Shown here piece by piece: positions 10,426 through 62,886 of a DNA stretch of 64,000 nucleotides. The stretch lies in sequence record PP408249.1. One strand, written 5' to 3'. A program made the position numbers and the translations under genes. The notes under the pieces were generated by a model that was not told where the DNA came from, made no database searches, and saw nothing but the letters and a program-made list of their open reading frames with translations. Position 1 is the stretch's first letter, and the number at the start of each line of letters is the position of its first letter.

Positions 10426-12003
10426 ATGTCAGACTTAATAATACAAATAAAAGAATTGATAAAAAGTAAACCAAAGCATTTCAGTGTTTTGATTAAAAAA
10501 GATTTAAAATTAGCAGAATTTGTAGAGCAACACTGCACTAATCCCTATAATACTGTGTATGCTGCTAAAGTGTATACTGCTATAACCGGCGAAAAAGAAG
10601 AATGCAAATACGGAAACACAAAAAAATTTAATTCAATAAATGACGGGTTTAGATTTTGTGGTACTGCATCCTCGTGCAAGTGTTGTAAAGAAAGTGTATC
10701 TAATAACTTAGTGCAATTGAAAAAGATAGAAAATAAAGAAATATCAAAGAAAAAGCGTGAGAAAACTAATCTAAAAAAATACGGAGTATCAAATACTGGG
10801 CAATCTGCTATTGCTCTACAAAATCATGCAAAATTTTACGAAAATAAACAAAATGTAGACAAAGTAACGTCTAAGATAAAGCACACTAAGTCAGTAAAAT
10901 ACGGTAACAAAAATTTTAATGGTAATAAATGGTATTCTAAAATATCGGAAAAACTAAAAGAAAATAATTTATCTTTTACTATACAAGAACATGAATATAA
11001 GGGTATGGCAGAAACATATTGCATAAAATGTGGAACTTGTAATAACACTTTTATGTCTAAGGTTAGATATAGTAGTATACCGACGTGTGCAATATGTATG
11101 CCAGAATTGACAGTATGTAATTCAACACAAGAACAAGAATTATTTAATTTTATAAGACAACATTATTCCGGAGAAATAATAACTGGATCTAGAAAAATAT
11201 TAGATTCTGGAAAAAGTTTAGATATATACCTTCCTGAAAAAAATCTTGCAATAGAATATAATGAACTTTATTGGCATGTAATAGATAACGATCGTTTACC
11301 GCACATAACCAAAACGTATCATTATGACAAATATATAGGTTGTAAAGAAAAGGGAATATCGTTAATTACTATATATGGACATTTGTATAACTCTAAAAAA
11401 ACTATAATAGAAAACAGATTACTTCATAAATTAGGCTATACACAAGAAACAGTATATGCTAGAAAATGTATTATTAAAGATGTGCCTTCTGCAGAAGAAA
11501 AAGAATTTTTGAATAAAACGCATATACAAGGTTATGTTCCGTCATCTATAAAATACGGATTGTATTTTAATGATGTATTAGTTGCATTAATGAGTTTTAT
11601 AAAATCATCTAACAGAAACATTTCAGGAAATAACAGATACGACTACGAATTGCTTAGATATGCAACATCTTGTTCGGTACTAGGCGGTGCATCTAAATTG
11701 TTTTCTCATTTTGTAAAGAATAATATTCCTAATTCTATAGTTTCATATTCACAAAACGAATGGAATACAGGCAATGTTTACCGTATATTAGGGTTCAAAC
11801 AAGAACCTAAAATAAACATAGGATATTGGTATGTAAGTCCGGATTTTTGTAAAGTATATCATAGGACTAATTATACTAAAAAGAAATTAATAGAACATGG
11901 TTTTAATTCAAATAAGTCAGAACACCAGATAATGGAAGTGCGTGGATTTAGACGACTATATGATTGTGGTAATACCAAATGGGTGTGGGAAAACAAAATA
12001 TAA
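10426..12003 (+). CDS. Putative homing endonuclease (Vsr/PD-(D/E)XK-like) fused to Mom/GNAT-like domain, paralog 1
   Basis: LDIYLPE.NLAIEYN.LYWH nuclease motif; C-terminal ARKC...ELLRYA...GGASKL...SY...W..G.VY...GF...YDCG..KWVW; Cys-rich N-terminus. Confidence 0.7.
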   Translation: MSDLIIQIKELIKSKPKHFSVLIKKDLKLAEFVEQHCTNPYNTVYAAKVYTAITGEKEECKYGNTKKFNSINDGFRFCGTASSCKCCKESVSNNLVQLKKIENKEISKKKREKTNLKKYGVSNTGQSAIALQNHAKFYENKQNVDKVTSKIKHTKSVKYGNKNFNGNKWYSKISEKLKENNLSFTIQEHEYKGMAETYCIKCGTCNNTFMSKVRYSSIPTCAICMPELTVCNSTQEQELFNFIRQHYSGEIITGSRKILDSGKSLDIYLPEKNLAIEYNELYWHVIDNDRLPHITKTYHYDKYIGCKEKGISLITIYGHLYNSKKTIIENRLLHKLGYTQETVYARKCIIKDVPSAEEKEFLNKTHIQGYVPSSIKYGLYFNDVLVALMSFIKSSNRNISGNNRYDYELLRYATSCSVLGGASKLFSHFVKNNIPNSIVSYSQNEWNTGNVYRILGFKQEPKINIGYWYVSPDFCKVYHRTNYTKKKLIEHGFNSNKSEHQIMEVRGFRRLYDCGNTKWVWENKI

Positions 12004-12053
12004 GTTTTTAAAATACAGAGTTGTGTTATACTTTAAAAATAAAAGGGTTTTTA

Positions 12054-12518
12054 GTGTCAGACATAGTTGATATACGTTTTGAGTTTGTAGGATACGATTC
12101 AGACATAAAATACATAAATAATTGCGAAAATAGTGGATGTTATGATGAAGGTATATGTCGTTGCGGACATTTTGAAGATACAGATCTAAATGGTATACCA
12201 GATGATCCCGAATATATTTTTCCAACTAAAATGTCTGTATGGAGACGAGTAGGATATAATGGAATATATGATGATTACAAACATAGTTACTATGAAATTA
12301 CTGAATCCGATAGAAAATATTTTGCAAAAATAATGCATTTTATCGGTTATACACTAGATTCTTTTTATTTTGATATCGAATCGGGGTACTATGGCGAAGA
12401 AGGCGGAGATCTAGTACACGATAAACAGGGCTTGTTAAAATCTGCCATGATTGACATTTTAAACAGACCTGACGAAGAAGACAGACTGGTGTATTTATTA
12501 TCTAAAACTTGGGAATAA
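12054..12518 (+). CDS. Hypothetical Cys-motif protein (paralog A)
   Basis: Likely GTG start 12054 (track start 12021); C...C...GICRC and GYYGEE shared with next gene. Confidence 0.65.
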   Translation: MSDIVDIRFEFVGYDSDIKYINNCENSGCYDEGICRCGHFEDTDLNGIPDDPEYIFPTKMSVWRRVGYNGIYDDYKHSYYEITESDRKYFAKIMHFIGYTLDSFYFDIESGYYGEEGGDLVHDKQGLLKSAMIDILNRPDEEDRLVYLLSKTWE

Positions 12519-12519
12519 T

Positions 12520-13218
12520 ATGGATACATTCATTACATTTTATGGCAGATACTATGCAAATTTAGATTACGAACTACAACATAATTGTAATAACGATTGT
12601 ATAGAAAGCGGCATATGCAGATGTTCTGTAATAACATCCCCTGTAGTGGTATCTATCAATAACTATAAAGTGTATGATATGGTCGAGGTGTTAGTAAATA
12701 AACCCGATTTAAACGGAACACCTAGATGTGTTAGATATTTGTATAGTCAAATAGAGCAATATTGTGTGGAAAGAATCATAACAAAACATAAAATTTTAGA
12801 CGGTTCACTGTATTATGTAACTGTCGAGCGTGGTTATTACGGTGATGAAATAGGTGACATAATCCATGAAAATGAACAAAATGCAATGGATGATATATTA
12901 ACGATGATTTCGTTAAAAACCGATATAGAAAAACTACATTATGTTTTAATGTTAGAATACGGGTATATTGCTCCTATAATTTCTGAGTGTAAAAACTTGG
13001 CTATTAAAAAAGTATGTATAAACGATATAGTTCCTACTATTGCATATAAAAGTATGGAACCTCAGCATACCTATCATTTAGATGTATATGATGATATGAT
13101 AATGGGTGTGCTAAAGGGAAATAAATTGATCGATGGTAATCATAGATATTCATTTTATATGAATACAATGAGAGATAAAAACAAAGATAACTTTGTATAT
13201 TATATAGAATTATCTTAA
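12520..13218 (+). CDS. Hypothetical Cys-motif protein (paralog B) with ParB/Srx-like C-terminus
   Basis: GICRC, GYYGDE, LIDGNHR. Confidence 0.6.
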   Translation: MDTFITFYGRYYANLDYELQHNCNNDCIESGICRCSVITSPVVVSINNYKVYDMVEVLVNKPDLNGTPRCVRYLYSQIEQYCVERIITKHKILDGSLYYVTVERGYYGDEIGDIIHENEQNAMDDILTMISLKTDIEKLHYVLMLEYGYIAPIISECKNLAIKKVCINDIVPTIAYKSMEPQHTYHLDVYDDMIMGVLKGNKLIDGNHRYSFYMNTMRDKNKDNFVYYIELS

Positions 13219-13226
13219 AGGTATAT

Positions 13227-13532
13227 ATGAAAACAATAGGCGTTGATTATGATGACACTATATCGCAAGATGATAACGGATGGTTATCTGTATTACTTGC
13301 ACTCGAGCATATTGGATACAGGGTTGTTATTGTTACTTACCGTAATCCTACCTGCTATCCAGAAGATCTTCAATTTTTAATAGATAAAGGATATAAGGTA
13401 TACTTTACAAGTCAACATGCTAAAAGAACGTATATGGAAAATCTTGGCATAGATATAGATATTTGGATAGACGATAGTCCTGAATCTATATTATATAATT
13501 ATGATTCATATTTAGGTAAGTATATAAAATAA
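13227..13532 (+). CDS. HAD-superfamily hydrolase-like protein
   Basis: IGVDYDDT (DxD) and WIDDSP motifs. Confidence 0.7.
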   Translation: MKTIGVDYDDTISQDDNGWLSVLLALEHIGYRVVIVTYRNPTCYPEDLQFLIDKGYKVYFTSQHAKRTYMENLGIDIDIWIDDSPESILYNYDSYLGKYIK

Positions 13533-13568
13533 AAAAGGAGCATAATGCTCCTTTTTTATTGATAAATA
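13531..13568 (+). promoter_or_regulatory. Terminator followed by late promoter
   Basis: GGAGCA-TAA-TGCTCC + T tract (13531-13557), GATAAATA 13561-13568. Confidence 0.7.
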
Positions 13569-13592
13569 TATGCATCTTAAGGAATAAGGTGT

Positions 13593-16500
13593 ATGTCGAG
13601 TAAAATTAAATTCACGGATCAATATATCCTATCTAGTGTTGGGCAAACTTCTAATAATATAGTATATTTGCAAGTAAATGATGATCAACAATTAGTTGTT
13701 ACTCATCCTATGTATGCAACTGAATGGTCTACATTAGGTGGGCTTAGAGTAACAGGTGATCAGTCTAAATTTGATGGATCATTAGAAGTTGGATATGAAT
13801 TGCTAGTAGGACAAACATCTACCTTTAACAACGACATGGTAGTAAACGGTTTAGTTACAGTAAACAGAGATTCTCTAGATGCAATGCTCATTCACGGGAA
13901 TGTTACATTACATGGCAACTTAACTGTAGTAGGTAGCAGCTCAGGGACTACACCCGGGCAAGTAACTATTTCCGACAACATTATGGTCGTGAATACAGAT
14001 GACGTAGGTCCGGGCGTCACTGCAACATATTCTGGTTTTGAAGTCCAGCGTGGAATTCCCGTAGGCGAAACTAATAGTCACGGTGAACCTGGCCAAGGTA
14101 AATTGCCTTCTGCTGGATTAGTTTGGAATGAAGTGCAAAAATCCTGGGATCTTAATTATAACCCTATTCTTTCTGAAAAATTACCACAAAATCCTAGAAT
14201 AATTAACTTAGGGCAGCCAGTTGCTGACAACGATGCTTCTACAAAAAAATATGTGAATGATAGCATAACTGCTGCACTTGACGATGATATTTATTTAGAT
14301 AGACTTACTGATGTAACAATTTCTTCTCCGGCTAATAAAAATATACTACAGTACGATTCTTCTACATCGCAATGGAGAAATTTACCATATTCGTTTATAC
14401 GATTAACGGATGTAACTGGTGTATCTGTCCCGAGAGGATACGTGAGATGGAATGCAGCAGGAACACAGTTAGTATATGAAACCACTATAGATTATGCACA
14501 GTTAACTGGATTGTCTGATGTAGCTAAAGCAGGTCAAGGATCTCTAAGTTTTCTTAGTGATGTAACATTATCATCGTTATCTAATACACAGGCATTATTT
14601 TATAATGGAACCTCTTGGGTTAATAGACTAATTAATTACTCCGACATTCAAAATACTCCTACTAACAATTCGTATAGTTTTATTGGATTAAATGATACAA
14701 ATAATACAGTTGTTAATAACGGATATGTAAGATGGAATGCAGCAGGAACACAGTTAGTATATGAAACCACTATAGATTATGCACAGTTAACTGGATTGTC
14801 TGATGTAGCTAAAGCAGGTCAAGGATCGTTAGATTATTTAACAGATGTTAGTATAGGAACTGCTAGCTCCGGTAATGTACTAAGATATAACGGAACTGAT
14901 TGGGTAAACCAAGTATTATCATATACTGATCTTTCTAATACCCCTACTAACAATTCGTATAGTTTTATTGGGTTAAATGATACTAATGATACTGCACTTT
15001 CGGGTGGTTATTTACGATGGAATCCCACCGGAACACAGATAGTATATCAATCCACTATAGATTATGCACAGTTAACTGGGTTATCTTCTGTTGCTAAAGC
15101 AGGACAAGGGGCTCTAAGTTTTCTTAGTGATGTAACTATATCGTCACCTGGCGCTAGTAATACATTGCGATACGATACTACTTCATCTAAATGGGTAAAC
15201 ACCAGACTTGCTTATTCCGATTTAACAGGTCAACCGACTTCTGCTAATTATCAACTAGTTGGGTTAAGTGATACTGCAAGCACATCTGTACCATTGGGAT
15301 ATCTTAGATGGAACGCCGCCGGAACTCAAGTAACATATGCTACTACTATAGATATATCAGTTATATCTGGTAAATCTACTGTAGCTTCTGCTGGTTCGGC
15401 AACACTATCTAATCTAGAAGATGCTGCTGTCACAACGCCTGCTGCTGGGAATACTTTAATATGGAATACGTCTACAAATAAATGGACAAACGGCATATTA
15501 GATGTATCTAATATTACTAATGCTGTACCTGTTAGTAGAACAGTATCTGCAGGGACTGGACTATCCGGCGGAGGAAATTTATCTAGTAATATTACGTTGT
15601 CGGTTAATAGAACATTAACCGATACATGGTATGCTGCTGCATCACATACTCATGATGCATCTAATATTACGTCTGGTGTTATTGCGAATGCTAGACTGCC
15701 AGTTGGAAGCACAACAGCACAAGGTATTTTACAGTTAACAGATGGTGTTGCTAGCACATCTACAACTACTGCCGCTACACCCAATTCGGTGAAAACTGCA
15801 TATGACTTAGCAACGACAAAAGCTAATATATCACATACTCATGATGCATCTAATATTACGTCTGGTACTATTGCTGTAGCCAGACTTCCAGTTTCGTCTA
15901 CTACTGCACAAGGTATAGTTCAGCTTACTGACGGTGTTGCTAGCACATCTACAACTACTGCTGCTACACCTAATTCAGTAAAAACTGCATATGATTTAGC
16001 AACGACAAAAGCTAATGCTTCTCACACCCATGATGCATCTAATATTACGTCTGGTGTTATTGCGAATGCTAGACTGCCGTTTGCCTCAACTACTGTATAT
16101 GGTATAGTAACTCTGTTAGATTCAGTTGCCAGTACATCTATATCTACTGCTGCTACACCGAATTCGGTGAAAACTGCATATGACTTAGCAACGACAAAAG
16201 CTAATATATCACATACACATACTCCTGCTCAAGTAGGTTTATCGAATATTTCTAATAACGGAAATACTATAACGGGAAATACAACTATATCCGGTGCATT
16301 GTCAGTAACAGGAAATGCTGTTTTTAATACATCTGATATAAAATTAAAAGATAATATACAGCCCATTAAAAATCCAGTAGAACTTCTTAGCAAAATTTCA
16401 GGATATACCTATACTAGAAATGATTGTAATAACGAAAAACAAACCGGTATTATTGCGCAGGAAGTTGAAACGATACAACCTGAAAGTGTAAGAGAAGTAG

Positions 16501-16619: not shown

Positions 16620-16635
16620 CCTAAGTCCCTTTTTT
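16605..16635. terminator. Bidirectional terminator
   Basis: AAAAAAAGGGACT/AGTCCCTTTTTT between convergent genes. Confidence 0.8.
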
Positions 16636-17224
16636 CTGAAATTCCTAATAGCATTAAACTAAAATCATTTAAGCAGTATTCTAGTTTATCTCTTATTTTA
16701 TTTAATTCTTTTATATTTTTATTAAAATATTTGTAATCTTTATTATATTTTGATTTAAAAACACATATTTTGTTTAAATCGCAGTTTATATCTGAAATTA
16801 CAGATAATAAAAAATATTCTGTATAGAATGTAGATATAATCCATGATGTTTTTAGAGTAACTAAATCAGATAACAATGCTGCCTGTAACTCTTGATGTAT
16901 ACTATAAACGGGATTTATATTCTTTTTATAATTAGCAAGTATGGCAGGGTATTTATATTTAGATGTTTCTGTTTCTAGCGTGTTATATAATGTACATAAT
17001 TCTGAATCGAATTTTATGGTTTCGTTATAATAATTTAACGCAATTTTAGTTGCTATATCTAATTCTAATTTTTTATATAATTCTTTTGTGCAAAGATTTT
17101 TTATATTAGAATTAATACCTTTATTATTATATAATTCTTTGTTTATTATACCGGTTTTATTATATATGTTTAAATATTTTTTATATTTAAATTCAATTAA
17201 ATTAGTTACTTCATTGTGTACCAT
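16616..17224 (-). CDS. Hypothetical protein
   Basis: 202-aa ORF coupled to upstream NUDIX gene. Confidence 0.6.
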   Translation of the reverse strand: MVHNEVTNLIEFKYKKYLNIYNKTGIINKELYNNKGINSNIKNLCTKELYKKLELDIATKIALNYYNETIKFDSELCTLYNTLETETSKYKYPAILANYKKNINPVYSIHQELQAALLSDLVTLKTSWIISTFYTEYFLLSVISDINCDLNKICVFKSKYNKDYKYFNKNIKELNKIRDKLEYCLNDFSLMLLGISEKRDLG

Positions 17225-17226
17225 TT

Positions 17227-20115: not shown

Positions 20116-20169
20116 ATAAACTCCTAGTTATAGGTATTTATCTGATAAAATAAACAAAAATATCTCAAT

Positions 20170-20198
20170 AAAAAAGCAACCTTAGGTTGCTTTTTTTT
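20170..20198. terminator. Intrinsic terminator
   Basis: AAAAAAGCAACC-TTA-GGTTGCTTTTTT. Confidence 0.75.
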
Positions 20199-20679: not shown

Positions 20680-20692
20680 GTGTATCTATCCT

Positions 20693-41936: not shown

Positions 41937-44576
41937 ATGGCAACTCTCATTTCTCCGGGTGTAAGTGTAACTATAACAGACGAATCTTTTTATGCATCGT
42001 CTGGTCCGGGAACTGTACCGCTTATAATCATAGCAACTGCTCAAGATAAAACTGATAGTGCCGGTACTGGAATTGCACCGGGAACCACTAGACAAAATGC
42101 AGGTAGACTATGGCTAATTAGTTCTCAAAGAGAACTACTACAAACGTTTGGTGTCCCGACTTTTAAAACAGTCGGCGGAACTGCATTACACGGATATGAA
42201 CTAAATGAATATGGATTGTTAGCAGCACATTCGTATTTAGGAATATCTAATAGAGCATATGTTGTGCGGGCAGATGTAGACACATCTCAGCTAGAACCGT
42301 CTGATACTGAGCCCACTGCTAATCCTGCAGACAACACCTATTGGTTAAACCCTACAAAAGTTGTGTCGGGGTTGTATGAATCTAACGGCACTGACTGGGT
42401 AAAAGCAAATGTATTCTATGCAACTGAATTTGACGCAGCTGGTCGTCCAGCAAATGTTCCGTCTAGTTACAAATATGCAATGTCAGTAGGACAAGCTGCT
42501 CCTAACGTAGAAAATGCAATATATAGACGCAATATATCCGGCGCCTGGGTTTTAATTACTGCTAACGATAATACAGTTGTATATAATAAGGTATATCCTG
42601 TAGTGGGTGCTGTAGGGAATCTATGGGTAAACCTAAGGGAAACTTCATATGCATTGTCTAGATTCGATGCAAATGTAGGAAGTTTTGTATCCGTATCTAC
42701 TCCTTTGTACAAAACGAGCGATGATGCTACTGACGGTTTCGGAACTACACTACGCCAGGGCTCGGTGTTTGTGCAATATAATGCAAAAGGAACATTATCT
42801 AGTGCAGTTAATCCTGCAGTAACTGAACTACAACATAAGGTAAAAATACACAACGGTAACACTTTCACTGCTGTTTCTGTAACCTTAGCAGCAACTGGTC
42901 CTTATAGCGATACATTAGTATTAGGACGCTATAACGGAACATCAGTGACAGTTAACGCATCTGGTTCTAGCGTAGAGGCATTTGCTCAATCGTTAGGACA
43001 AGCTTTAATTTCTAACGGTGTTACTGATATTTCAGTTAATTACAATACTGCCACTAGAATGGTAGCGTTAGTTAATGATAGTGGAAAAGATATAATAGTT
43101 ACATCATCCACTATGTTTAGTGCCGGCATATATTCTAATTGGGTTCCACTAGAATATAGTTCTGATGTAAAACAACCGTCCGGTCAATTAGATAACGGTA
43201 CATTGTGGTACAGCACAGATTATAAAGTTGATATTCTAGTTAATGATGGCGTAGGAGCATGGACTGATTTAGCTGGCAGTTTATTTGTACAAAGTGCTGA
43301 ACCTACTACTAACGTAGCTGACGGCGATGTATGGGTAAGCACTTCGTCTGCAGGCAATTATCCAGTTATATATCGTAGGGTAAATAACCAGTGGAGATTA
43401 GTAGATAATACTGATCAAACAACACCTAACGGTGTAATATTTGCTGATGCAAGACCTGTAAATTCCGGAGCATTAGATGCAGACGCTCCAGACGCACTTG
43501 CATATCCGCAAGGAATCTTGCTATTTAACACTCGCTATTCCACACGTAACGTTAAACAATGGAACAATAATTATACCTTTGAAGGTAACGTTATAGGAGA
43601 TAGATGGGTATCTGTTAGTGGTTTAAGATCGGATGGTTCTTTATACACTGGTGGTGAAGCAGTTAAACAAGTAGTCGTTCGTTCTATTGCTAGCACAATA
43701 CAGGCTAATGAAGATATTCGTTCTGAAAACGTGTTTTATAACCTAATTGCTGCGCCTGGCTATCCTGAATTAATAGACGAGTTAGTAGCATTAAACGTTG
43801 ATAGAAAACAAACTGCATTTGTTATAGGCGATTCGCCATTTACTTTGAGTGCAACTGGTACTAATTTACAAGAATGGTCTTCTAATTCTAAATTAGCAAC
43901 AGAAAACGGTTCAGATGGATTAGTTACTGCTGATCCGTATTTAGGTGTATATTATCCGTCCGGTCTAAGTACAGATCTAAATGGTAATAATGTAGTTGTT
44001 CCTCCTAGTCATATGTTACTTCGTACTATCGCGTATAATGACCAAGTTGCATATCCGTGGTTCGCCCCGGCAGGATATCAACGCGGTATAGTGTCTAACG
44101 CAACTTCGGTAGGTTATATAAACAGCGAAGGTGAATTCGTTGCAGTTTCGTTAAATGAAGGGCAGCGGGATACTCTGTATACTAATAATGTTAACCCAAT
44201 ATCGCAAGTGCCTAATAGAGGTATAGTGGTATGGGGTCAAAAATCTAGAAATCCAGTTACTTCGTCATTGGATAGAGTTAACGTAGCAAGATTGGTAAAC
44301 TATGTTAGATATCAATTAGATTTGTTGCTAAAACCGTTTGTATTCGAGCCAAACGATTCACGTACTCGTCAAGCAGTACAGGTAGCAGTAGAGGCTTTCT
44401 TAAGCGAAATAGTAACATTACGCGGTATCACTGATTTCGTTGTAGACTGTTCTGATTCTAATAATACTTCGGATCGTATAGATAGAAACGAATTGTGGGT
44501 TGACGTTGCAATAGTGCCCACCCGTGCAGTTGAATTTATTTATGTTCCGATTCGTTTGCAAAATACTGGATCTTAA
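41937..44576 (+). CDS. gp18: Tail sheath protein
   Basis: LISPGVSVT.TDES, PWFAPAG..RG, Y.N.VNPI, WGQK, LDRVNV.RL, FEPND..TR, EFIYVP. Confidence 0.96.
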   Translation: MATLISPGVSVTITDESFYASSGPGTVPLIIIATAQDKTDSAGTGIAPGTTRQNAGRLWLISSQRELLQTFGVPTFKTVGGTALHGYELNEYGLLAAHSYLGISNRAYVVRADVDTSQLEPSDTEPTANPADNTYWLNPTKVVSGLYESNGTDWVKANVFYATEFDAAGRPANVPSSYKYAMSVGQAAPNVENAIYRRNISGAWVLITANDNTVVYNKVYPVVGAVGNLWVNLRETSYALSRFDANVGSFVSVSTPLYKTSDDATDGFGTTLRQGSVFVQYNAKGTLSSAVNPAVTELQHKVKIHNGNTFTAVSVTLAATGPYSDTLVLGRYNGTSVTVNASGSSVEAFAQSLGQALISNGVTDISVNYNTATRMVALVNDSGKDIIVTSSTMFSAGIYSNWVPLEYSSDVKQPSGQLDNGTLWYSTDYKVDILVNDGVGAWTDLAGSLFVQSAEPTTNVADGDVWVSTSSAGNYPVIYRRVNNQWRLVDNTDQTTPNGVIFADARPVNSGALDADAPDALAYPQGILLFNTRYSTRNVKQWNNNYTFEGNVIGDRWVSVSGLRSDGSLYTGGEAVKQVVVRSIASTIQANEDIRSENVFYNLIAAPGYPELIDELVALNVDRKQTAFVIGDSPFTLSATGTNLQEWSSNSKLATENGSDGLVTADPYLGVYYPSGLSTDLNGNNVVVPPSHMLLRTIAYNDQVAYPWFAPAGYQRGIVSNATSVGYINSEGEFVAVSLNEGQRDTLYTNNVNPISQVPNRGIVVWGQKSRNPVTSSLDRVNVARLVNYVRYQLDLLLKPFVFEPNDSRTRQAVQVAVEAFLSEIVTLRGITDFVVDCSDSNNTSDRIDRNELWVDVAIVPTRAVEFIYVPIRLQNTGS

Positions 44577-44594
44577 CATAAATTAGTAATGCAA

Positions 44595-44651
44595 AATAAA
44601 AAGGCACTTAGTGCCTTTTTATTTGACTACAAATTATATCTATAGTATACT
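44595..44651 (+). promoter_or_regulatory. Terminator abutting sigma70-type promoter
   Basis: GGCAC-TTA-GTGCC hairpin; TTGACT(44623)-17-TATACT. Confidence 0.7.
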
Positions 44652-44677
44652 ATTGTTTAAAACTAAGGATTGCTTTT

Positions 44678-46294
44678 ATGTCTATTGTATGTAAAATTTG
44701 TAATAAATCATTTCCTAGTATGATTACAAGTACACATCTAAAAACACATAACATCACTACTGCAGAATACAAAGATCTTTATGGAAAATATTCTCTTGTA
44801 TCAGATGAATATAGATCAAAGCGGTCAGAACAGTCATCTGGCATTAATAATCCTAATTATGGAAATAAATGGTCAGACAGCATGAAAGAATCTATGTCTA
44901 ATAAAAAATCCGGAATTATTCCATGGAATAAAGGCATAGAGTTACACGATACTACTATGTACGTGAAATCTGCAGAACAGAGAGAACTAAAGTACAAAGA
45001 AGGGATACTAACTAGGAAATCATATGTTAGAACTGTAGAAATAAATAAAAAAATTTCTGATAGTGTGAAGAAGTATGCTGCAGAAAATAAAGAAGAAGTA
45101 AAACAGAGAAGTGCCAAAGCAAAAGATACATATAGTACAAAGAAAACGTTAGGGTTAGTGCAAATACGAAAAGGATATAAGTTAACCAAATCACATAAAG
45201 AAATAGCTATACAAACATTAAACAATTATAGGGCTTCTAAAATAGCTGAATCTAATAAACAAATAGAAAGTAATATATCTCTTGCAAATCTAACATTATT
45301 AAATGACATAAATGAAAACAGCTTAGTGTTAAGGTGTAATATATGTAATAATGAATGTTCTTTTACAAAACAATATTTTAGAGCTAGTAAATTTAAAATA
45401 GAATTATGTCCTGTATGTTATCCTAGAAATAGTAATAGATCTGAAAAAGAAAAAGAATTAGAATATTTTATAACAAGTTTAGGTATTTCATGTATAAATT
45501 CTGCACGTATAAACAATAAAGAAATAGATATATTTTGTAAAGAATTAAATATTGGATTTGAATTTAACGGATTATACTGGCATAGTGAGGATGTGTTAGA
45601 GTATTCTGGGTACAGTAAAACAAAAGATTACGAAAAGAAAATATTTTTTAGAGATAAAGGAATTAGATTAATTCAAATATTTGAAGATGAGTGGGACTTA
45701 AAGCAAGATATAGTAAAGAGTAGAATAAGAGCTATATTAGGAAAAACAGAACACAAAATATATGCAAGGAAATGTACTGTTAAAGAAATAAATTCTAAAG
45801 TTGCAAATGATTTTGTAGAAAAAACACATTTACAAGGTAAAGGTAGAGCAAATGTAAGATTGGGGTTGTATTATAACAATGAACTAGTTTCTGTGATGAC
45901 ATTTTTAAATAAAGATATTACTAATAAAACATCGAGCTGTCAGATAAATCGTTTTAGTGTAAAACATAATACATCTATCCCCGGCGCCGCGGGAAAATTA
46001 TTTGCTTACTATATAAATAACTATAATCCATCTAGTGTTATTTCGTATGCAGATTCTCGCTGGTCCGACGGTAATTTATATGAACAGCTAGGATTTAAAT
46101 TAGATAAACAGACACTCCCTAATTACTGGTATATAAAAGATAATGATCTTAAAAGATATCATAGATACAATTTTAGAAAAGATAAGTTGCCCGAAACTTT
46201 ACTAACAGAAAAAGAATATATGGATAGTTTGGGATGGAATAGAATATGGGATTCGGGATCTACTAAATGGGTTTGGACAAATAAAGGGGCATAA
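44678..46294 (+). CDS. Putative homing endonuclease + Mom/GNAT-like domain, paralog 2
   Basis: C2H2-like N-terminus, NUMOD3-like NPNYG.KWS...PWNKG, IDIF...GFEFNGLYWH, SYAD.RWSDG.LY..LGF. Confidence 0.7.
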   Translation: MSIVCKICNKSFPSMITSTHLKTHNITTAEYKDLYGKYSLVSDEYRSKRSEQSSGINNPNYGNKWSDSMKESMSNKKSGIIPWNKGIELHDTTMYVKSAEQRELKYKEGILTRKSYVRTVEINKKISDSVKKYAAENKEEVKQRSAKAKDTYSTKKTLGLVQIRKGYKLTKSHKEIAIQTLNNYRASKIAESNKQIESNISLANLTLLNDINENSLVLRCNICNNECSFTKQYFRASKFKIELCPVCYPRNSNRSEKEKELEYFITSLGISCINSARINNKEIDIFCKELNIGFEFNGLYWHSEDVLEYSGYSKTKDYEKKIFFRDKGIRLIQIFEDEWDLKQDIVKSRIRAILGKTEHKIYARKCTVKEINSKVANDFVEKTHLQGKGRANVRLGLYYNNELVSVMTFLNKDITNKTSSCQINRFSVKHNTSIPGAAGKLFAYYINNYNPSSVISYADSRWSDGNLYEQLGFKLDKQTLPNYWYIKDNDLKRYHRYNFRKDKLPETLLTEKEYMDSLGWNRIWDSGSTKWVWTNKGA

Positions 46295-52140: not shown

Positions 52141-52149
52141 TATTTAGAT

Positions 52150-53718: not shown

Positions 53719-53749
53719 ACTAAATATAGTTAAATTGGATTTAGATTTA

Positions 53750-55240: not shown

Positions 55241-55268
55241 ATACAATTAAAGTTTTGAGGTAAGAATT

Positions 55269-56759: not shown

Positions 56760-56839
56760 AATTATTATCAAGATCATTAAAATGGATTCGAAATAAAATT
56801 AATTCTGTATACTTTGCATATTACACTAAAAATAAATGG

Positions 56840-56868
56840 TTGACAAATAGATAACTGCATTATATAAT
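56840..56868 (+). promoter_or_regulatory. Consensus sigma70 promoter for gp32
   Basis: TTGACA-17-TATAAT. Confidence 0.85.
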
Positions 56869-56881
56869 TACACCATAACTT

Positions 56882-56925
56882 AGTTTTGCAGCTAACCCGA
56901 GCAAAACTGTATTAAAAGGGTTTAG
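56882..56925 (+). promoter_or_regulatory. H-type pseudoknot in gp32 leader (putative autoregulatory operator)
   Basis: S1 56882-56889/56901-56908; S2 AACCC 56894-56898/GGGTT 56918-56922; A-rich tract to RBS. Confidence 0.65.
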
Positions 56926-56958
56926 GATAAAATAAAAAAATATTAAGGATAATTCATT

Positions 56959-57945
56959 ATGGCTTCTCTTGCTGAACTACGTCAAAAATTAAAAGATCAA
57001 GAAACAAAACGTGGCACAAAATCATCTGGCAGTGCAGATAAAAGTAATTTCCCATTCTGGGACATGAATGAAAACGACAGTGCTACTGTAAGATTTCTTC
57101 CTGATGCAAACACTGATAATACCTTTTTCTGGGTAGAAAAACAACAAATTAAAATTCCATTTAGTGGCATTGTAGGTATGAATAGTAAACCTACAGTTGT
57201 TACTGTACCGTGTGTAGAAATGTGGGGGGAATCTTGCCCTATTCATCAAGAAATCCGTCCGTGGTTTAAAGATCCTTCGTTAGAGAAATTAGCGCGTACT
57301 TATTGGAAGAAACGTTCTTATATTTTCCAAGGACTTGTTCGTAAGTCACCTCTTGTAGAACAAGAACTACCAGAGAATCCTATTCGCAAATTTACATTCG
57401 GAAGTCAGATTTTTAATCTAGTTAAATCATCTCTATTAGACCCCGAAATGGAAAACATTCCCACCGATTATTTAAATGGTACTGATTTCCAGATAACTAA
57501 ATTAATGAAGGGCCAATATGCCGATTACGCTACATCTAAATGGGCAAGGAAAGAATCTTCGTTAACTGAAGAAGAATTCCAGGCAATCCAAACATATGGT
57601 CTGTATGATTTAAGTAAATTTTTACCTGCTAAACCTGATGCAGAAGCATTAGCTGCTATATTCGAGATGTTCGAAGAATCAGTAGAAGGTAAAGAATATG
57701 ATCCGCAGCGTTGGGGGAAATACTATCGCCCTTACGGGGTTGAAGTTCCTACTAATACTTCCGTAAGTGTACCTGTATCTAAACCAGAACCTAAGACTAC
57801 GGTATCTAGTTCTTCAGTTATAGAAGACGATAACGATGATCTTCCTTGGGAAGATACTACTAAACCTGTAGAGCCTGTCAAATCTGCTTCTAATGCGCAA
57901 GATATAATTGCGCTCATCCGCGCCCGCCAAAACAGCGGCAACTAA
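56959..57945 (+). CDS. gp32: Single-stranded DNA-binding protein
   Basis: VRFLPD...FFW, CVEMWGE.CP, KRSY, G.DF.I.K..KG.YADY..S, acidic tail. Confidence 0.9.
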   Translation: MASLAELRQKLKDQETKRGTKSSGSADKSNFPFWDMNENDSATVRFLPDANTDNTFFWVEKQQIKIPFSGIVGMNSKPTVVTVPCVEMWGESCPIHQEIRPWFKDPSLEKLARTYWKKRSYIFQGLVRKSPLVEQELPENPIRKFTFGSQIFNLVKSSLLDPEMENIPTDYLNGTDFQITKLMKGQYADYATSKWARKESSLTEEEFQAIQTYGLYDLSKFLPAKPDAEALAAIFEMFEESVEGKEYDPQRWGKYYRPYGVEVPTNTSVSVPVSKPEPKTTVSSSSVIEDDNDDLPWEDTTKPVEPVKSASNAQDIIALIRARQNSGN

Positions 57946-57947
57946 AT

Positions 57948-57978
57948 AGGGAGAGGGGATCGCTGATCCCCTCTCTTT
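57948..57978 (+). terminator. Intrinsic terminator
   Basis: GAGAGGGGATC-GCT-GATCCCCTCTC-TTT. Confidence 0.75.
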
Positions 57979-58051
57979 AATATAACCTAAAATAGCCAAA
58001 AAGTACAACTACAATGTTGGAAGGACGGCAGTATTATAAAAAGGACATTTT

Positions 58052-58297
58052 ATGACAAAACCATTCGATATTTCTAAATTTAGAAAAGATATTACCAAAA
58101 GTATCACTGGCATTAGTACAGGATTTAATGACCCAACTATCTGGATTAGTACCGGCAACTATACTCTTAATTATCTTATTAGTAGCGACTTTAATAAAGG
58201 CGTACCTATGGGTAAAGTAACTATGTTCGCCGGCGAGTCGGGTTGTTTGCCTGAAACTGCTAAAGTGAAAATTAGACTATCTAAGAAGCAATCTTAA
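58052..58297 (+). CDS. uvsX: UvsX/RecA N-extein (64 aa) + split intein N-fragment (17 aa)
   Basis: WISTGN..LN..IS....GVP.GKVT.FAGESG then CLPETAKVKIRLSKKQS*. Confidence 0.92.
   Translation: MTKPFDISKFRKDITKSITGISTGFNDPTIWISTGNYTLNYLISSDFNKGVPMGKVTMFAGESGCLPETAKVKIRLSKKQS
58244..58294 (+). mobile_element. Split intein N-fragment
   Basis: Cys1 block A (CLP.T..V) directly after the first half of Walker A. Confidence 0.85.
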
Positions 58298-58306
58298 CTG
58301 TCCAGT

Positions 58307-58346
58307 GTCTCCGTCGAGGATAAATACTTTTATCTAAAACGGAGAC
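58307..58346 (+). promoter_or_regulatory. RBS-occluding hairpin containing a late promoter
   Basis: GTCTCCGT/ACGGAGAC outer stem, GATAAA/TTTATC inner stem, GATAAATA 58319-58326. Confidence 0.7.
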
Positions 58347-58349
58347 TTT

Positions 58350-59783
58350 ATGGGAAATTACAATGTTCTTTCTACAAAAAACTTTAAGAAGCTATGTAAT
58401 GAGTTAAACATAGTAACGATATCAGAAAAGTACATTTCTGATATACGTAAGATAGAAGATTCTGCTAAGAGCAAAGTGGATTCTGCATCTCAGCGTATGA
58501 TATTAACTATGATAACTGTGAAAGTTCCCGACTTATATGATGCATATAACAGATACTATCAGCTCAGAACAGATGGTATTAGTACAAAAACTCAAGACAG
58601 TATTTCTTATATTTTTGGAAAAGACTTCCTCGAATCTGTTAATTTACTAATCAGTAATAGATATAAAACTGCATTCCGTAAAGGAATGACAGTGGAAGAG
58701 GCATTTATAACACGTAATAAAGACTTTTCCAATAATGGTGTGTATTATAACCAGATGACTGATAAGCAAAAGAAACGTTTATCATTATTGCTTAGTGTGT
58801 ATACACCAGAAAGGTTGGAGTTTTATAAAAAGACAATTTCGTTTTTTATTAAGTTAGATTTGACTAATTATGCAGGAAGAATGAAAAGACTGATGAAACT
58901 GGGATCTAGTACGTCTTTATATGCTAGCGTATTACGGTATGGTAAATCTGTCGGAAAAAGCACACATTCATCTGTATCTGCGGTAAAGAGAAACTATTTG
59001 CCTACTTCGATACAATATTGGATGGCAAAGGGGTTTGATGAAGATACTGCATTAGTGAAGATAAACGAACATCAACAGAAAGCAAGTGCCATGTCTTCCA
59101 AAAAACTAAAAGGCACTAGCGAATACTCTGTTCGATCAGTTGCATATTGGATTAAAAACGGGTATAGCGAAGAAGAGGCAAAAGGGAAAGTATCTAATAT
59201 ACAGAATACTTGGAAAAATGTATCTCAAGAAGAGCGTGATCGAAGAATAGAATTGTGGATGACTACAATGAGTCTTAAAACAGACGAGGAGAAATCTTTG
59301 ATAAACCTTAAAAAAACTCACAGCCCGGAAGGGATAATGGCAAGGACAAATTGCGATTATGATATTGCATTTAAGCAAAGCGTTGATTTTTTTAAGAAAC
59401 GAAATAATTCTTCTAAAGTATCTCAAGAACTATTTTGGGGAATTGCCGAGGATATCGATACCGATGGAGTTTACTTTTCTGAACTAAACTACGAATACCC
59501 TGTTATGGGGAAAATAGTAGATTTCTATGATTCTAAAAGCAAAACAGTAATCGAATTTTATGGAAACTTTTGGCATGCAGATAGTACATATACTGATGAC
59601 ACACTGATATATGGAAAAACTGCTAAAGAAATAAGAGAATCGGACATTTACAGAGAAACGTTAATTAGATCATCTGATTTGGTTAGTGATTTTATAGTAG
59701 TTTGGGAAAAGGACTTTAGGAAGAATCCGAAAGAAACAATTAAAAATTTAGTTAATATTTTAAATAATAAAAGGAAATTTTAA
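58350..59783 (+). mobile_element. Free-standing Vsr-like homing endonuclease between the intein halves
   Basis: C-terminal VDFYD...VIEFYG.FWH...VVWE.D; tandem S..YW..KG..E..A repeats. Confidence 0.75.
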
Positions 59784-59786
59784 TAA

Positions 59787-61058
59787 ATGGAATACATCGA
59801 AAAGGAAGTAACAGTTAGTGAACTGAAGTCTCTCTACAGTAGTAATGAATACGAAATTGAGTTAGACACACCAGATGGCTGGCAAAAACTGGGATCTTGG
59901 TTCGATAAAGGCCCTCTTAGTATGGTGACGGTAGAAACGCAGGATGGGTTAGTTACTAGATGTGCAGTAAACCATATGATCGAAGTGGTAGACGGATCGG
60001 AAACTTTTTGGACACTTGCAAAAGACTTGTACGAAGGCCAACAAGTGCTTACTGTAAACGGTGTCTCAACAATTAGTTCTGTAACTGAAAGTGGCATCGA
60101 AGAATGTTTCGATTTCGAAATACTCCACGAAAATCATCGTTACTATGGTGATGGATTCTCTTCTCACAATAGTGGCAAATCGTATATAGTATCAGGAAAC
60201 ATTGTAAAAGATGCACAAGAAAAGGGAATTTTTGTTGTATTACTTGATTCAGAAAATGCACTCGACGAATCTTGGCTACATGCACTAGGTGTAGACACTG
60301 GACCGGAAAAAATGTTACGCATCTCTGTATCGATGATAGATGATGTAGCAAAAATTATTAGTGATTTTGTTAAAGATTACAAGACTAATTATGCCGAACT
60401 ACCTAACAATGATCGACCAAAGGTGCTTTTTGTTATTGACTCGCTCGGAATGTTATTGACACCAACGGAAACTGCACAATTTCAAAATGGTGATATGAAA
60501 GGAGATATGGGCAGGAAAGCAAAACAATTAAAAGCATTGATTTCTAACTGTACAAATATGTTCGGCAACTTAGACATAGGCCTTGTTTGTACTAACCATA
60601 CATATGCATCTCAAGATTTATTTCAGCCTGACGCTGTAATTTCGGGTGGCAGCGGCGCAGTCTATGCCGCGTCAATTGTAGTGGCAATGCAAAAGTTAAA
60701 GTTAAAAGAAGACGAAGCAGGTAATAAAATTTCTGAAGTAGCTGGTATTCGTGCAGTATGCAAAGTTGTAAAATCTCGATATGCAAAGCCGTTTGAGACA
60801 GTAAAAGTAAATATTCCATATGATACAGGTATGAGTCCGATATCGGGTCTATTTGACTTGTTTGAAAAAACAGGTAAACTTGTAAAACAAGGCAATAGAT
60901 ACAAGTACATAACCAAAGATGGTACCGAAATGCTGTATTATAGGAAAGAATGGAATGATTACGATAAACTAAAAGTAATTATGAATGAATTTACAGACGA
61001 AGACCTAGGCAATGTCGTAGAAGTGGAAGAGGGTCATTTAGAAGAGTTCGATGAATAA
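59787..61058 (+). CDS. uvsX: Split intein C-fragment (128 aa) + UvsX/RecA C-extein
   Basis: CAVNH block B, CFDFEI block F, SSHN end at 60170, +1 Ser; then SGKS, LDSENALD, IDSLG, DMG.KAK, SGG.G..YA. Confidence 0.93.
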   Translation: MEYIEKEVTVSELKSLYSSNEYEIELDTPDGWQKLGSWFDKGPLSMVTVETQDGLVTRCAVNHMIEVVDGSETFWTLAKDLYEGQQVLTVNGVSTISSVTESGIEECFDFEILHENHRYYGDGFSSHNSGKSYIVSGNIVKDAQEKGIFVVLLDSENALDESWLHALGVDTGPEKMLRISVSMIDDVAKIISDFVKDYKTNYAELPNNDRPKVLFVIDSLGMLLTPTETAQFQNGDMKGDMGRKAKQLKALISNCTNMFGNLDIGLVCTNHTYASQDLFQPDAVISGGSGAVYAASIVVAMQKLKLKEDEAGNKISEVAGIRAVCKVVKSRYAKPFETVKVNIPYDTGMSPISGLFDLFEKTGKLVKQGNRYKYITKDGTEMLYYRKEWNDYDKLKVIMNEFTDEDLGNVVEVEEGHLEEFDE

Positions 61059-62886
61059 ATTATGCGAAACAGATCGTATTAATATTATCAAATTACACTT
61101 CGATGATTTAAAATCTGTATCTGAATTAAAGAAAATATATGGAGTCTCTTATGATGTCATTAAAACCATCATAAGAGATGAAACGAATCGTCTGCCGTTG
61201 CAAGAAACTGATATAAAAATTTTGAAATTTAAAAAACTTGTTTCAAAGGAGTTGTTATTTGAATTACATGTAATTAAAAAACAATCATTTAATGAAATAA
61301 GAAAAACTTATAAGATTAATGAACTTCATTTAAAACAAGTGTTTAATGATTACGGAATACCAATTGAAAAGTGTTTATATACTGCTACTAACAAGAAGCG
61401 TAAAACAAAAAAGCCTGAAGATTTTACTAAAGACTTTTTCGAACACTTAGTATATAACGAAAGACGAACAATTAGTTGGATAAAAAATAATTATAACTTT
61501 AATTTTGAAGAACTAAAACATCATTTAACACATTTAAAAATCGATTATACTAATTCGTTGCCACCTGCTGTAAAACATCAACAAGATAAAATATCTAGAG
61601 AAACTCTAGCAGAAGAATTAAAAATTAAATCTATTGTTGATATAATAAATGAATACGGAATTTCTAGAACTTATGTAGAAAGCGTTATAAAAGAATACAA
61701 TATACAGTATTTTACAAAACCGAAACATTCTATATTAAGTGGTAAAGAATCAGAAATTTATCGGATGTATTATGATGAATGTATGACTACATACCAAATA
61801 GCAGAAAAATTGGGAGTATGTCAATACACCATATGGAAAATAATGGCAGATAACGGATGGAAAACACGAGAACCGATTAAAAAAATTGATTTGATTTGGA
61901 ATGATATAAAAGAAGAAGTTGTTAAATTAATAGACAACGGTTATACATTAGCTGCTTTATGTGAAAAATACGAAATAACATCTATTACTGAAAAGTTAAT
62001 AGAAGAAGGTATAAAATATACAAAGGGAAATATTTCTTCTGGTCATGCAGAAATATCTGAATATGTGCGTTCATTGGGATTTAATGTAATCGACAATGAT
62101 CGTACTATTATATTTCCGCGAGAAATTGATATTTTTATTCCCGAACTTAACATAGGAATAGAATACAACGGATTATATTTTCATAGCACACGAACAGAAG
62201 GAAATGTAACAAAGCATAGAGAAAAATATAGCATATGTAAACAAAAAGGTATTCGTTTAATACAAATTTTTGAAGATGAATTTATTCATAAGAAAGAACT
62301 AGTAAAGAGAAAATTAGCGCACATTTTAGGAAAATCTAATAATAAATGTTATGCAAGGAATTGTATAGTTAAAGAAATATCGGTAGCAGACAAACGAAAT
62401 TTCTTTAAAAAATATCACATACAAGAAGATTCTGCATCCTCGTATGCATATGGATTATATTATGATAATGAATTAGTTTGTGCTATGTCTTTTCTTAAAA
62501 AGAAGAAATGTACAGAACTAGTTAGATATGCATCTTCTATGCACGTGATCGGCGGATTTTCTAAGTTGTTGAAATATTGTATTAATAATAACAAAATAGA
62601 TGTTATAAACACATATGCTGATCTCAGATGGTCGAATCCGACAAATAATGTATATGTAAACAATGGGTTTGATATACTGTATGAGACTGATTTTAATTAC
62701 ACTTATGTGAGTAAAGAGGATTTTTCAAAAAGGCTTAATAGGCAAAAATTTATGAAACACAAGTTGAAAAACATTTTATCAGATTTCGATAAATCATTAA
62801 CAGAAGAAGAGAATATGAAAAATAATGGATTTTATCGAGTATACGATGCTGGCCATTTAAAATTGCAATATAAGGTTAATAAATGA
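61051..62886 (+). CDS. Putative homing endonuclease + Mom/GNAT-like domain, paralog 3
   Basis: Tandem HTH-like repeats, EIDIFIPE.NIGIEYNGLYFH, ELVRYAS...GGFSKL, TYADLRWS, VYDAG. Confidence 0.7.
   Translation: MNKLCETDRINIIKLHFDDLKSVSELKKIYGVSYDVIKTIIRDETNRLPLQETDIKILKFKKLVSKELLFELHVIKKQSFNEIRKTYKINELHLKQVFNDYGIPIEKCLYTATNKKRKTKKPEDFTKDFFEHLVYNERRTISWIKNNYNFNFEELKHHLTHLKIDYTNSLPPAVKHQQDKISRETLAEELKIKSIVDIINEYGISRTYVESVIKEYNIQYFTKPKHSILSGKESEIYRMYYDECMTTYQIAEKLGVCQYTIWKIMADNGWKTREPIKKIDLIWNDIKEEVVKLIDNGYTLAALCEKYEITSITEKLIEEGIKYTKGNISSGHAEISEYVRSLGFNVIDNDRTIIFPREIDIFIPELNIGIEYNGLYFHSTRTEGNVTKHREKYSICKQKGIRLIQIFEDEFIHKKELVKRKLAHILGKSNNKCYARNCIVKEISVADKRNFFKKYHIQEDSASSYAYGLYYDNELVCAMSFLKKKKCTELVRYASSMHVIGGFSKLLKYCINNNKIDVINTYADLRWSNPTNNVYVNNGFDILYETDFNYTYVSKEDFSKRLNRQKFMKHKLKNILSDFDKSLTEEENMKNNGFYRVYDAGHLKLQYKVNK

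Follow-up and report, generated by a model that had tools for sequence, protein, structure and literature searches.

Introduction

Hef-type homing endonucleases and the Mom protein of phage Mu, which modifies DNA, have been studied separately. In phage U5, which is related to T4, the hef gene lies between nrdA and nrdB and is reported to cleave nrdB (PMC2988022), and the "Hef-like" proteins F-LimIII, VII, VIII and X are known from the Dickeya phage LIMEstone1 (PMC3296691). Taylor and colleagues (2011) added "bacteriophage Hef type homing endonucleases" to the Vsr-like "EDxHD" family, whose prototype is I-Bth0305I (PMC3239194). On the other side, Iyer, Anantharaman, Krishnan, Burroughs and Aravind (2021) described Mom domains that are fused to restriction-endonuclease-fold domains, among them "five momylating enzymes" in the phage PA5oct (PMC7824862). 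Here we analyze a stretch of 64,000 nucleotides from sequence record PP408249.1 (hereafter, the window), in which three genes encode a Vsr-like nuclease joined to a Mom-like domain of the GNAT fold. We are confident that these are paralogous, free-standing homing endonuclease genes of the Hef family that carry a true Mom-type domain. What the Mom-like domain does is harder to say, and most of the argument below concerns that question.

For comparison, Mu Mom moves glycine from Gly-tRNA(Gly) onto the N6 of adenine (Silva et al. 2026, PMC13219725). The same study reported that R111, S124 and R151 are essential (the S124A protein is inactive) and that H58, Y59 and Y159 are important; it was known earlier that changing D149 to alanine greatly reduces activity. 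We use these residue numbers for the equivalent positions in other proteins.

As far as the literature that we searched shows, the same proteins have been treated in two bodies of work without cross-reference, once as Hef homing endonucleases and once as momylating enzymes, and we found no paper that unites homing endonuclease, Mom, GNAT, and phage. The gene family, its Vsr-like domain, the fusion of Mom to a nuclease, and these very genes are already known; the two readings seem not to have been connected with each other before. What is new here, and of modest interest, is the purifying selection on all three copies, their unequal retention of Mom residues, and the covariation at the nuclease-GNAT interface.

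Three Hef-like proteins share a two-domain unit

The window is identical to positions 62001-126000 of the genome of Pseudomonas phage vB_Pa-PAC2 (PP408249.1), a jumbo phage of 286 kb in the genus Wroclawvirus (the PA5oct-like phages). Ten more Wroclawvirus records match the window at 98.5-99.8%. The three open reading frames (ORFs), which we call genes 1, 2, and 3 or name by their first positions (ORF 10426, ORF 44678, and ORF 61051), lie on the + strand and encode 525, 538, and 611 amino acids (Table 1). A first-pass annotation of the window, which was made from the sequence alone, had placed each of them behind an essential gene and had remarked that such proteins are often labelled homing endonucleases. 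Both statements hold: the genes directly follow those for the major capsid protein, the tail sheath, and the C-terminal piece of RecA/UvsX (annotated in PP408249.1 as major head subunit, tail sheath monomer, and RecA-like protein), and all three are annotated there as "(putative) Hef-like homing endonuclease".

In all three proteins, the match to PHROG 3339 ("homing endonuclease") extends over almost the full length (E from 4e-95 to 4e-98), so the similarity among them is far beyond chance. In a three-way alignment, the N-terminal halves are dissimilar and a C-terminal unit is held in common. This unit had been put at about 260 residues; it is real, and it is longer than that (293, 284, and 283 residues in ORFs 10426, 44678, and 61051). 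In a family alignment of 65 sequences, the unit of ORF 44678 shares 37% identity with that of ORF 10426 and 42% with that of ORF 61051. Of the motifs that the first-pass annotation had quoted for the unit, the nuclease motif D-I-[YF]...E-[YF]-N-x-L-Y-[WF]-H is present in all three proteins. The others are less general: EL.R[YF] and GG.SKL are found in ORFs 10426 and 61051, where ORF 44678 has Q-I-N-R-F and G-A-A-G-K-L, and [ST]Y[AS]D is found in ORFs 44678 and 61051, where ORF 10426 has Q instead of D. The N-terminal parts are of different kinds, as described: cysteine-rich with no Pfam match in ORF 10426, C2H2 and NUMOD3 matches that are weak in ORF 44678 itself and strong in its homologs, and helix-turn-helix (HTH) repeats in ORF 61051 (HTH_28 at E 6e-8). 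To call them unrelated goes slightly too far, as a CxxC...CxxC stretch just before the nuclease is common to ORFs 10426 and 44678.

The first half of the unit matches the catalytic domain of I-Bth0305I (PDB 3r3p): a profile of 65 units aligned to it with E 1.2e-5 over profile positions 26-100, which bears out the earlier suggestion of a Vsr-like core. The Pfam families Vsr and MTES_1575 also gave weak matches in the window proteins and their homologs. The D, E, N, H, and K residues of the nuclease core are retained in all three proteins (the first four are D284, E295, N297, and H302 in ORF 44678), and these include the equivalents of D196, N208, and H213 of I-Bth0305I (D284, N297, and H302). 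The column that corresponds to D222 of I-Bth0305I varies more: it is D in ORF 44678 and H in the other two proteins, and it is less than 90% conserved in the family. Also, a conserved F-E-D-E-W motif reads Y-G-H-L-Y in ORF 10426, with G-H-L replacing E-D-E. Judging from these alignments, the first half of the unit is a predicted Vsr-like (EDxHD) nuclease with one active site. I-Bth0305I is thus a homologous nuclease, and it has the same modular layout, in which a NUMOD/HTH DNA-binding part precedes the nuclease. It differs in being intron-encoded and in ending after the nuclease, without a Mom-like domain. I-Bth0305I dimerizes to cut both strands, whereas here the partner of the nuclease would be the fused GNAT domain.

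The second half of the unit is related to Mom. In Pfam and NCBIfam scans of the three window proteins, no Mom profile matched at E <= 1; the links to both Mom and Vsr emerged through homologs and profile comparisons rather than from direct scans of the three proteins. Metagenomic homologs that are about 50% identical to ORF 44678 score 28-32 bits against Pfam PF25680 ("Mom protein family"), which has a cut-off of 27.1. When we used hhalign to compare the alignment of the units to 39 aligned Mom proteins that had been collected around Mu Mom (NC_000929), the probability was 91.4% (E 9e-7, 134 columns), and the positions of H58, E108, N110, R111, S124, D149, R151, and Y159 lined up.

Predicted structures agree. 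The AlphaFold2 model of the unit of ORF 44678 (45440-46291) has a predicted local distance difference test score (pLDDT) of 95 and a predicted template modeling score (pTM) of 0.91. The model does resemble a GNAT: in a Foldseek comparison to solved structures, the crystal structure of Mu Mom (8bv8) came first (E 1.4e-7), followed by many ordinary GNATs. With VIA-align, residues 109-284 of the model aligned to residues 37-224 of Mom (Z 13.2, 164 residues aligned). Compared to the ordinary one-domain GNATs, which aligned over roughly 120-145 residues, this was the longest alignment, and the aligned region takes in the Mom-specific part beyond the GNAT core. Together, the Pfam matches of homologs, the profile comparison, and the model indicate that the second half of the unit is a true Mom-family GNAT domain, as the first-pass annotation had proposed. 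By itself, the Mom-like domain matches 16,736 clusters at 50% identity, and it is mostly C-terminal in proteins of 450-700 residues.

Distribution of the family

The unit turned up at 983 places, which are spread over 419 phage records; 410 of these records have a place that spans 80% or more of its two domains. The copy number reaches 10-11 per genome in Campylobacter phages. Some relatives of these proteins are labelled in GenBank as "putative nuclease/acetyltransferase protein".

A member of the family is found at the hef locus of T-even phages as well: phage SG1 (Tequatrovirus) has a homolog exactly between nrdA and nrdB. This homolog carries the Mom-like domain as well as the nuclease, and its whole unit could be aligned to that of ORF 44678 (35% identity); it has N at the position of D149. 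Like Hef of phage U5 and the Hef-like proteins of LIMEstone1, the three window genes belong to PHROG 3339 and are free-standing behind conserved genes. The differences lie in the N-terminal DNA-binding parts and in the neighbors, which are the capsid, sheath, and uvsX genes here.

The Mom-nuclease fusions that Iyer and colleagues described from jumbo phages are the same proteins as the ones analyzed here (PMC7824862). Their reading is similar to a restriction-modification system, and homing is never mentioned: adenines would be marked genome-wide, the nuclease would attack unmodified DNA of the host or of a superinfecting phage, and the paralogs would broaden the protection. It is the published prediction for these proteins. 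Furthermore, their count of five in PA5oct agrees with our tblastn searches, which found five places for the nuclease and Mom-like unit in PA5oct and also in phage 30-3 (two members thus lie outside the window), and several restriction enzymes fail on PA5oct DNA (PMC12191111). Nevertheless, we consider this reading very unlikely. Each paralog has a different modular N-terminus of the type seen in homing endonucleases; the genes sit singly behind conserved genes rather than in a modification operon; the T-even hef locus belongs to the family; up to 11 copies per genome suit selfish spread better than defence; and, as described below, two of the three copies do not have all of the residues that are essential in Mom. 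The evidence here favors homing endonuclease genes.

Mom residues in the family and in the three copies

Across 260 family units, most of the residues that matter in Mom are nearly always present at the equivalent positions: H58 in 259 units, E108 in 253, R111 in 258, D149 in 245, R151 in 248, and Y159 in 258. The position of the essential S124 is more variable (S in 208 units, G in 34, and N in 10), and about 18% of the family is without the serine. The Mom-like domain resembles Mu Mom in fold and in sequence family, and across the family the equivalents of H58, E108, R111, and Y159 are retained, as are, for the most part, those of S124, D149, and R151. It differs from Mu Mom in context, as Mu Mom is a stand-alone dimer that acts genome-wide and the domain here is the C-terminal part of a predicted site-specific nuclease.

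The three copies differ in how much they have kept. ORF 61051 has the equivalents of H58, E108, R111, S124, D149, R151, and Y159, and its sole difference is V in place of N110. ORF 44678 has Q at the position of E108 and G at the position of S124. ORF 10426 has Q at the position of D149 and E at the position of R151. By this alignment, only the uvsX-linked copy appears to keep the full set of essential Mom residues; the other two copies, unlike Mu Mom, lack essential ones.

These patterns bear on the idea that the proteins both cut and modify. The Mom-like transferase would mark an adenine in or near the protein's own target, so that the genome that carries the gene is immune and unmodified incoming genomes are cut. 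The constellation of Mom residues is kept in most of the family, the essential positions are complete in ORF 61051, and the VIA alignment (residues 109-284 of the model and 37-224 of Mom) extends over the Mom-specific region beyond the GNAT core. Also, if the targets are conserved essential genes, then immunity by mutating the site would be costly, and modification would offer another way. Sandegren and colleagues reportedly found, in 2005, that Hef cuts the DNA of its own phage as well as the DNA of phages without the gene; such behavior would suit protection through modification better than protection through sequence. On the other hand, the nuclease core of ORF 44678 is intact even though it has G at the position of S124, and a sizeable minority of the family has no serine there either. 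In whole subfamilies, the equivalent of R151 has been replaced along with its partner in the nuclease (see below), and ORF 10426 has neither the D149 nor the R151 equivalent and yet is under purifying selection. Finally, the resistance of PA5oct DNA to restriction has been attributed to a modified guanine, not to a modified adenine (PMC12191111). We therefore view this idea as rather unlikely for the window proteins. Its extension to the Hef family as a whole, in which these would be single-chain, restriction-modification-like homing elements that put an acyl or aminoacyl mark on an adenine of their own target and whose charged interface couples both activities, strikes us as a shade more doubtful still.

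The logic of one polypeptide that cuts and modifies has precedent in the type IIG/IIC enzymes such as MmeI, which have a nuclease, a modification domain, and DNA recognition in one chain. The domains are unrelated, however: enzymes of the MmeI type combine a PD-(D/E)XK nuclease with an S-adenosylmethionine-dependent methyltransferase. Modification is proven for them and putative here.

Because ORF 10426 is under selection and subfamilies lack the equivalents of R151 or S124, the family-wide role of the Mom-like domain is probably not the full chemistry of Mom. Transfer onto DNA may still be possible in most family members and in the uvsX-linked copy, given the residues that they retain.

Covariation between the nuclease and the Mom-like domain

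To describe the covariation, we use the residue numbers of ORF 44678, in which R461 is the equivalent of R151 of Mom. Among 39,340 column pairs in an alignment of 376 units, the pair E338-R461 ranked fifth by corrected mutual information and was the top pair between the two domains; D337-R493 ranked sixth. The states of E338-R461 are E/R in 293 units, D/S in 13, S/Q in 12, Q/D in 9, W/D in 8, and L/E in 4, and the states of D337-R493 are D/R in 300, N/L in 16, and H/V in 5. In other words, pairs of opposite charges are swapped for neutral or hydrophobic pairs. The relatives of ORF 10426 form a subfamily in which both the E-D-E motif and the position of R151 are altered.

We infer that two contacts between the domains link the acidic motif of the nuclease to the Mom-type active-site cleft and form a fixed interface. 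Contacts of this kind agree with the high pTM of the two-domain model. In Mu Mom, R151 is required for activity; here its equivalent covaries with a residue of the nuclease, and in part of the family the two have been replaced together, which points to a structural role.

We also considered whether nuclease and Mom residues are lost jointly, as in a decaying restriction-modification system. At face value the association was strong (12 of 15 vs. 9 of 245, Fisher p ~1e-13). We did not use it, as only 3-5 pairs were supported when independent pairs were tested on the tree (median p of 1), and the association is better explained by contact covariation.

Another difference from Mu Mom is the loop before the position of S124. 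In the family, this loop reads V-[VI]-G-[GA]-A-S-[KR]-L (of 376 sequences, 375 have the first G and 347 have the A), whereas Mu Mom has no glycine in this loop. The glycine-rich loop resembles, at the level of the motif, the phosphate-binding G-x-G/A loop of GNATs that use coenzyme A (CoA), and the profile of glyphosate N-acetyltransferase gives a weak match that spans it. As the loop is unlike that of Mom, the donor, if there is any, need not be the same as Mom's. The first-pass annotation had raised the possibility of a nuclease that is regulated by acyl-CoA; since Gly-tRNA(Gly) is now the reported donor for Mu Mom (PMC13219725), acyl-CoA has ceased to be the obvious candidate.

In such a ligand-gated nuclease, the GNAT cleft would bind acyl-CoA or the end of an aminoacyl-tRNA and would switch the nuclease through the charged interface, so that cutting follows the state of metabolism or translation in the infected cell. 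The covarying interface does join the nuclease to the Mom-type active-site arginine, and both the loop, which is lacking in Mu Mom, and the match to glyphosate N-acetyltransferase would suit an acyl-CoA ligand. However, this is an argument from motifs, a catalytic role predicts the same conservation, and the reported donor of Mu Mom is Gly-tRNA and not acyl-CoA. We give this possibility little credence.

Insertion, fixation, and selection

The three genes have a GC content of 0.27-0.30, as compared to 0.36-0.45 for their neighbors. For instance, the capsid gene is at 0.445 and gene 1 is at about 0.30, and the sheath gene is at 0.37-0.42 and gene 2 is at 0.27. The distantly related jumbo phages EJP2 and XbC2 have the same order of neck, kinase, sheath, and tube genes, and in both of them the sheath gene is followed directly by the homolog of the tube gene (37% identity, E 4e-46). 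Thus, gene 2 is an insertion relative to these phages.

To quantify selection, we compared the genomes of PAC2, PA5oct, Deifobo, MIJ3, and 30-3. All three genes are intact and of identical length in these five genomes. The ratio of nonsynonymous to synonymous polymorphism (pN/pS) is 0.06 for ORF 10426 (61 segregating sites), 0.04 for ORF 44678 (44 sites), and 0.08 for ORF 61051 (22 sites), as compared to 0.05 for the sheath gene (76 sites) and 0.01 for the capsid gene (22 sites). Single domains of the three genes have pN/pS of 0.00-0.13. All three genes are under strong purifying selection.

At one point we suspected that the capsid-linked copy, without the acidic F-E-D-E-W motif and without the D149 and R151 equivalents, was a decaying pseudo-enzyme. 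We rejected this because its pN/pS is low (0.06), also domain by domain, because a subfamily has similar changes, and because the changed sites are covarying partners.

In the same five genomes, genes 1 and 2 exceed their neighbors in synonymous diversity (pS): it is 0.076 in gene 1 as compared to 0.032 in the capsid gene, and 0.058 in gene 2 as compared to 0.020 in the tube gene. Either a mutational bias of AT-rich genes or exchange with diverged alleles by recombination could account for this.

An alternative that must be weighed here is that the genes are domesticated residents, which no longer move and which serve the phage by excluding relatives, by stimulating recombination near essential genes, or by regulating late genes. 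They are fixed in 11 of 11 genomes, and their pN/pS (0.04-0.08) is as low as that of the sheath gene. Their synonymous diversity is at least that of the flanking genes, which implies that there was no recent sweep, in contrast to the ORF that lies between the two pieces of uvsX (58350-59783; see below). Their upstream signals are conserved, and gene 2 appears in RNA sequencing (RNA-seq) contigs at depths unlike those of the sheath gene. However, purifying selection is also expected for an element that needs its activity to win mixed infections, and eleven genomes that are nearly identical and come from a single genus make a small sample. We judge domestication to be unlikely.

Upstream signals and transcription

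Two of the genes had been proposed to have their own TTGACT-17 promoter abutting the upstream terminator. Upstream of ORFs 10426 and 44678 we do find a hairpin with a T-run and then a sigma-70-like site (Table 1), but these are pattern matches only and the bare pattern by itself is not significantly enriched: TTGACT-N17-TANNNT occurs 3 times in the window as compared to 1.3 expected, and at least 3 times in 13 of 100 shuffled sequences. ORF 61051 shares 8 nt, including the stop codon, with the end of uvsX, and it lacks a separate promoter-like site.

The hairpin-promoter stretch upstream of gene 1 is identical in all five of the genomes compared. Upstream of gene 2, the stem and both hexamers are unchanged and the changes are confined to the loop and the spacer. 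Neighboring synonymous sites differ by 3-8% where the hairpin stems and hexamers are unchanged.

In RNA-seq contigs from four of four runs, the contigs on the sheath side end at 44519-44614 and new contigs start at 44640-44832; furthermore, the depth of the contigs of gene 2 differs from that of the sheath gene. This break is suggestive, although contigs do not map a start site. In one of the four runs (X3), many short contigs span the 5' two-thirds of gene 2 (44692-45960), and their word depths are 1,500-7,700, as compared to 110-440 for the sheath gene and 144 for the 3' end of gene 2. This peak could be due to an abundant early or partial transcript, to antisense RNA, or to an effect of the assembly.

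Table 1. Features of the window, with the evidence for each. Coordinates are positions within the window.
Feature	Coordinates	Strand	Context	Evidence
Hef-like gene 1 (ORF 10426)	10426..12003	+	downstream of the major capsid gene	ORF; PHROG 3339, E 4.4e-97; annotation
Gene 1, Cys-rich N-terminal part	10426-11121	+		
Gene 1, Vsr-like nuclease	11122-11454	+		
Gene 1, Mom-like GNAT	11455-12000	+		
Hef-like gene 2 (ORF 44678)	44678..46294	+	between tail sheath and tail tube genes	ORF; PHROG 3339, E 4.3e-98
Gene 2, C2H2/NUMOD3-like N-terminal part	44678-45439	+		
Gene 2, Vsr-like nuclease	45440-45760	+		
Gene 2, Mom-like GNAT	45761-46291	+		
Hef-like gene 3 (ORF 61051)	61051..62886	+	overlaps stop codon of the uvsX C-terminal piece	ORF; PHROG 3339, E 3.6e-95
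Gene 3, HTH repeats	61051-62034	+		
Gene 3, Vsr-like nuclease	62035-62349	+		
Gene 3, Mom-like GNAT	62350-62883	+		
Major capsid gene	9120..10307	+	conserved gene upstream of gene 1; likely target region	annotation
Tail sheath gene	41937..44576	+	conserved gene upstream of gene 2; likely target region	annotation
UvsX/RecA-like C-terminal piece (intein C part and extein)	59787..61058	+	upstream of gene 3	Pfam RecA, 2e-10; PHROG 97 (UvsX), 2e-46; VidaL intein match
Hairpin and T-run (10344-10375), then TTGACT-17-TAGTAT (10377-10405)	10344..10405	+	sigma-70-like; upstream of gene 1	pattern match
Hairpin and T-run (~44598-44620), then TTGACT-17-TATACT (44623-44651)	44598..44651	+	sigma-70-like; upstream of gene 2	pattern match

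The record also annotates a "hypothetical protein" of 32 codons at 10282-10380, which overlaps the end of the capsid gene and spans the terminator-like hairpin before gene 1. This is probably not a real gene.

The split uvsX gene upstream of gene 3

The uvsX/RecA-like gene upstream of gene 3 is itself unusual, as an intein with an atypical split point interrupts it within the Walker A motif. The first piece (58052-58297, 81 amino acids) corresponds to the N-terminus of UvsX (PHROG 97, E 3e-13); after ...FAGESG, it closes with 17 residues, the first of which is Cys. The second piece opens with ~127 residues that are similar to the VidaL intein (PDB 6vgv, E 1.7e-35) and of which the last two are H-N, and then the recombinase resumes with S-G-K-S. 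For this phage group, a paper about phage MIJ3 reports that the DNA polymerase has a split intein; we did not find the uvsX intein mentioned there.

Between the two pieces lies an ORF of 477 amino acids (58350-59783), an arrangement that is known as a "fractured gene". This ORF had no family match in Pfam, NCBIfam, PHROGs, or the sequences of the PDB. It contains a D-F-Y...I-E-F-Y-G-N-F-W-H motif like that of the Vsr-type core (the similarity is weak, with only 34 columns aligned by hhalign at E 0.002), and there is no Mom-like domain at its end. Across the five genomes, it has just 1 segregating site in 1434 nt, whereas the uvsX piece next to it has 14. Such low diversity would agree with a recent homing sweep.

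Discussion

We propose that the three genes are Hef-family homing endonuclease genes in which the Mom-like domain serves as the partner of the nuclease. For this statement as a whole, the balance tips slightly in favor. The second part is the more tentative one: that the Mom-like domain is an integral partner of the nuclease, which works on the same stretch of DNA and holds or probes it near the cut, has by our estimate a little under an even chance.

The proposed mechanism is as follows. The genes would have been inserted in the intergenic space behind the capsid, sheath, and uvsX genes. The variable N-terminal part (zinc fingers, NUMOD3, or HTH repeats) would confer site specificity by docking on a long site in the neighboring conserved gene of a phage genome that is free of the element; the capsid and sheath genes are likely to contain such targets. 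The Vsr-like nuclease would then nick or cut at the docked site, with the Mom-like domain packed against it via the two charge pairs, D337-R493 and E338-R461, at the Mom-type cleft. In a mixed infection, recombinational repair from the genome that bears the element would copy the element along with the flanking allele.

Several observations weigh against this proposal. First, the equivalents of H58, E108, R111, and Y159 are near-invariant in 376 sequences. This conservation suggests that the Mom-like cleft still binds something specific, and it argues for real chemistry or for specific ligand binding, which a role in holding DNA plays down. Second, the contact between the covarying residues rests on sequences only. 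Third, alleles without the element are absent among the 11 Wroclawvirus genomes, as all three genes are in all 11 and there is no presence/absence polymorphism; outside this group, even the closest phages have sheath proteins with only about 38% identity. Fourth, long fixation together with strong purifying selection is unlike a classic selfish element that decays, and the genes may do something that benefits the phage.

The role of the Mom-like domain is directly testable, thanks to the published mechanism and crystal structure of Mu Mom. Furthermore, the covarying charge pairs and the three natural variants are ready-made mutants: one copy has the full catalytic set, one has lost the serine, and one has an altered interface. 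If the Mom-like domain does modify DNA, then these genes would represent a new way for a selfish element to shield its own target inside essential genes. If it does not, then they would be a clear case of an enzyme fold that was recruited as the fixed partner of a nuclease.

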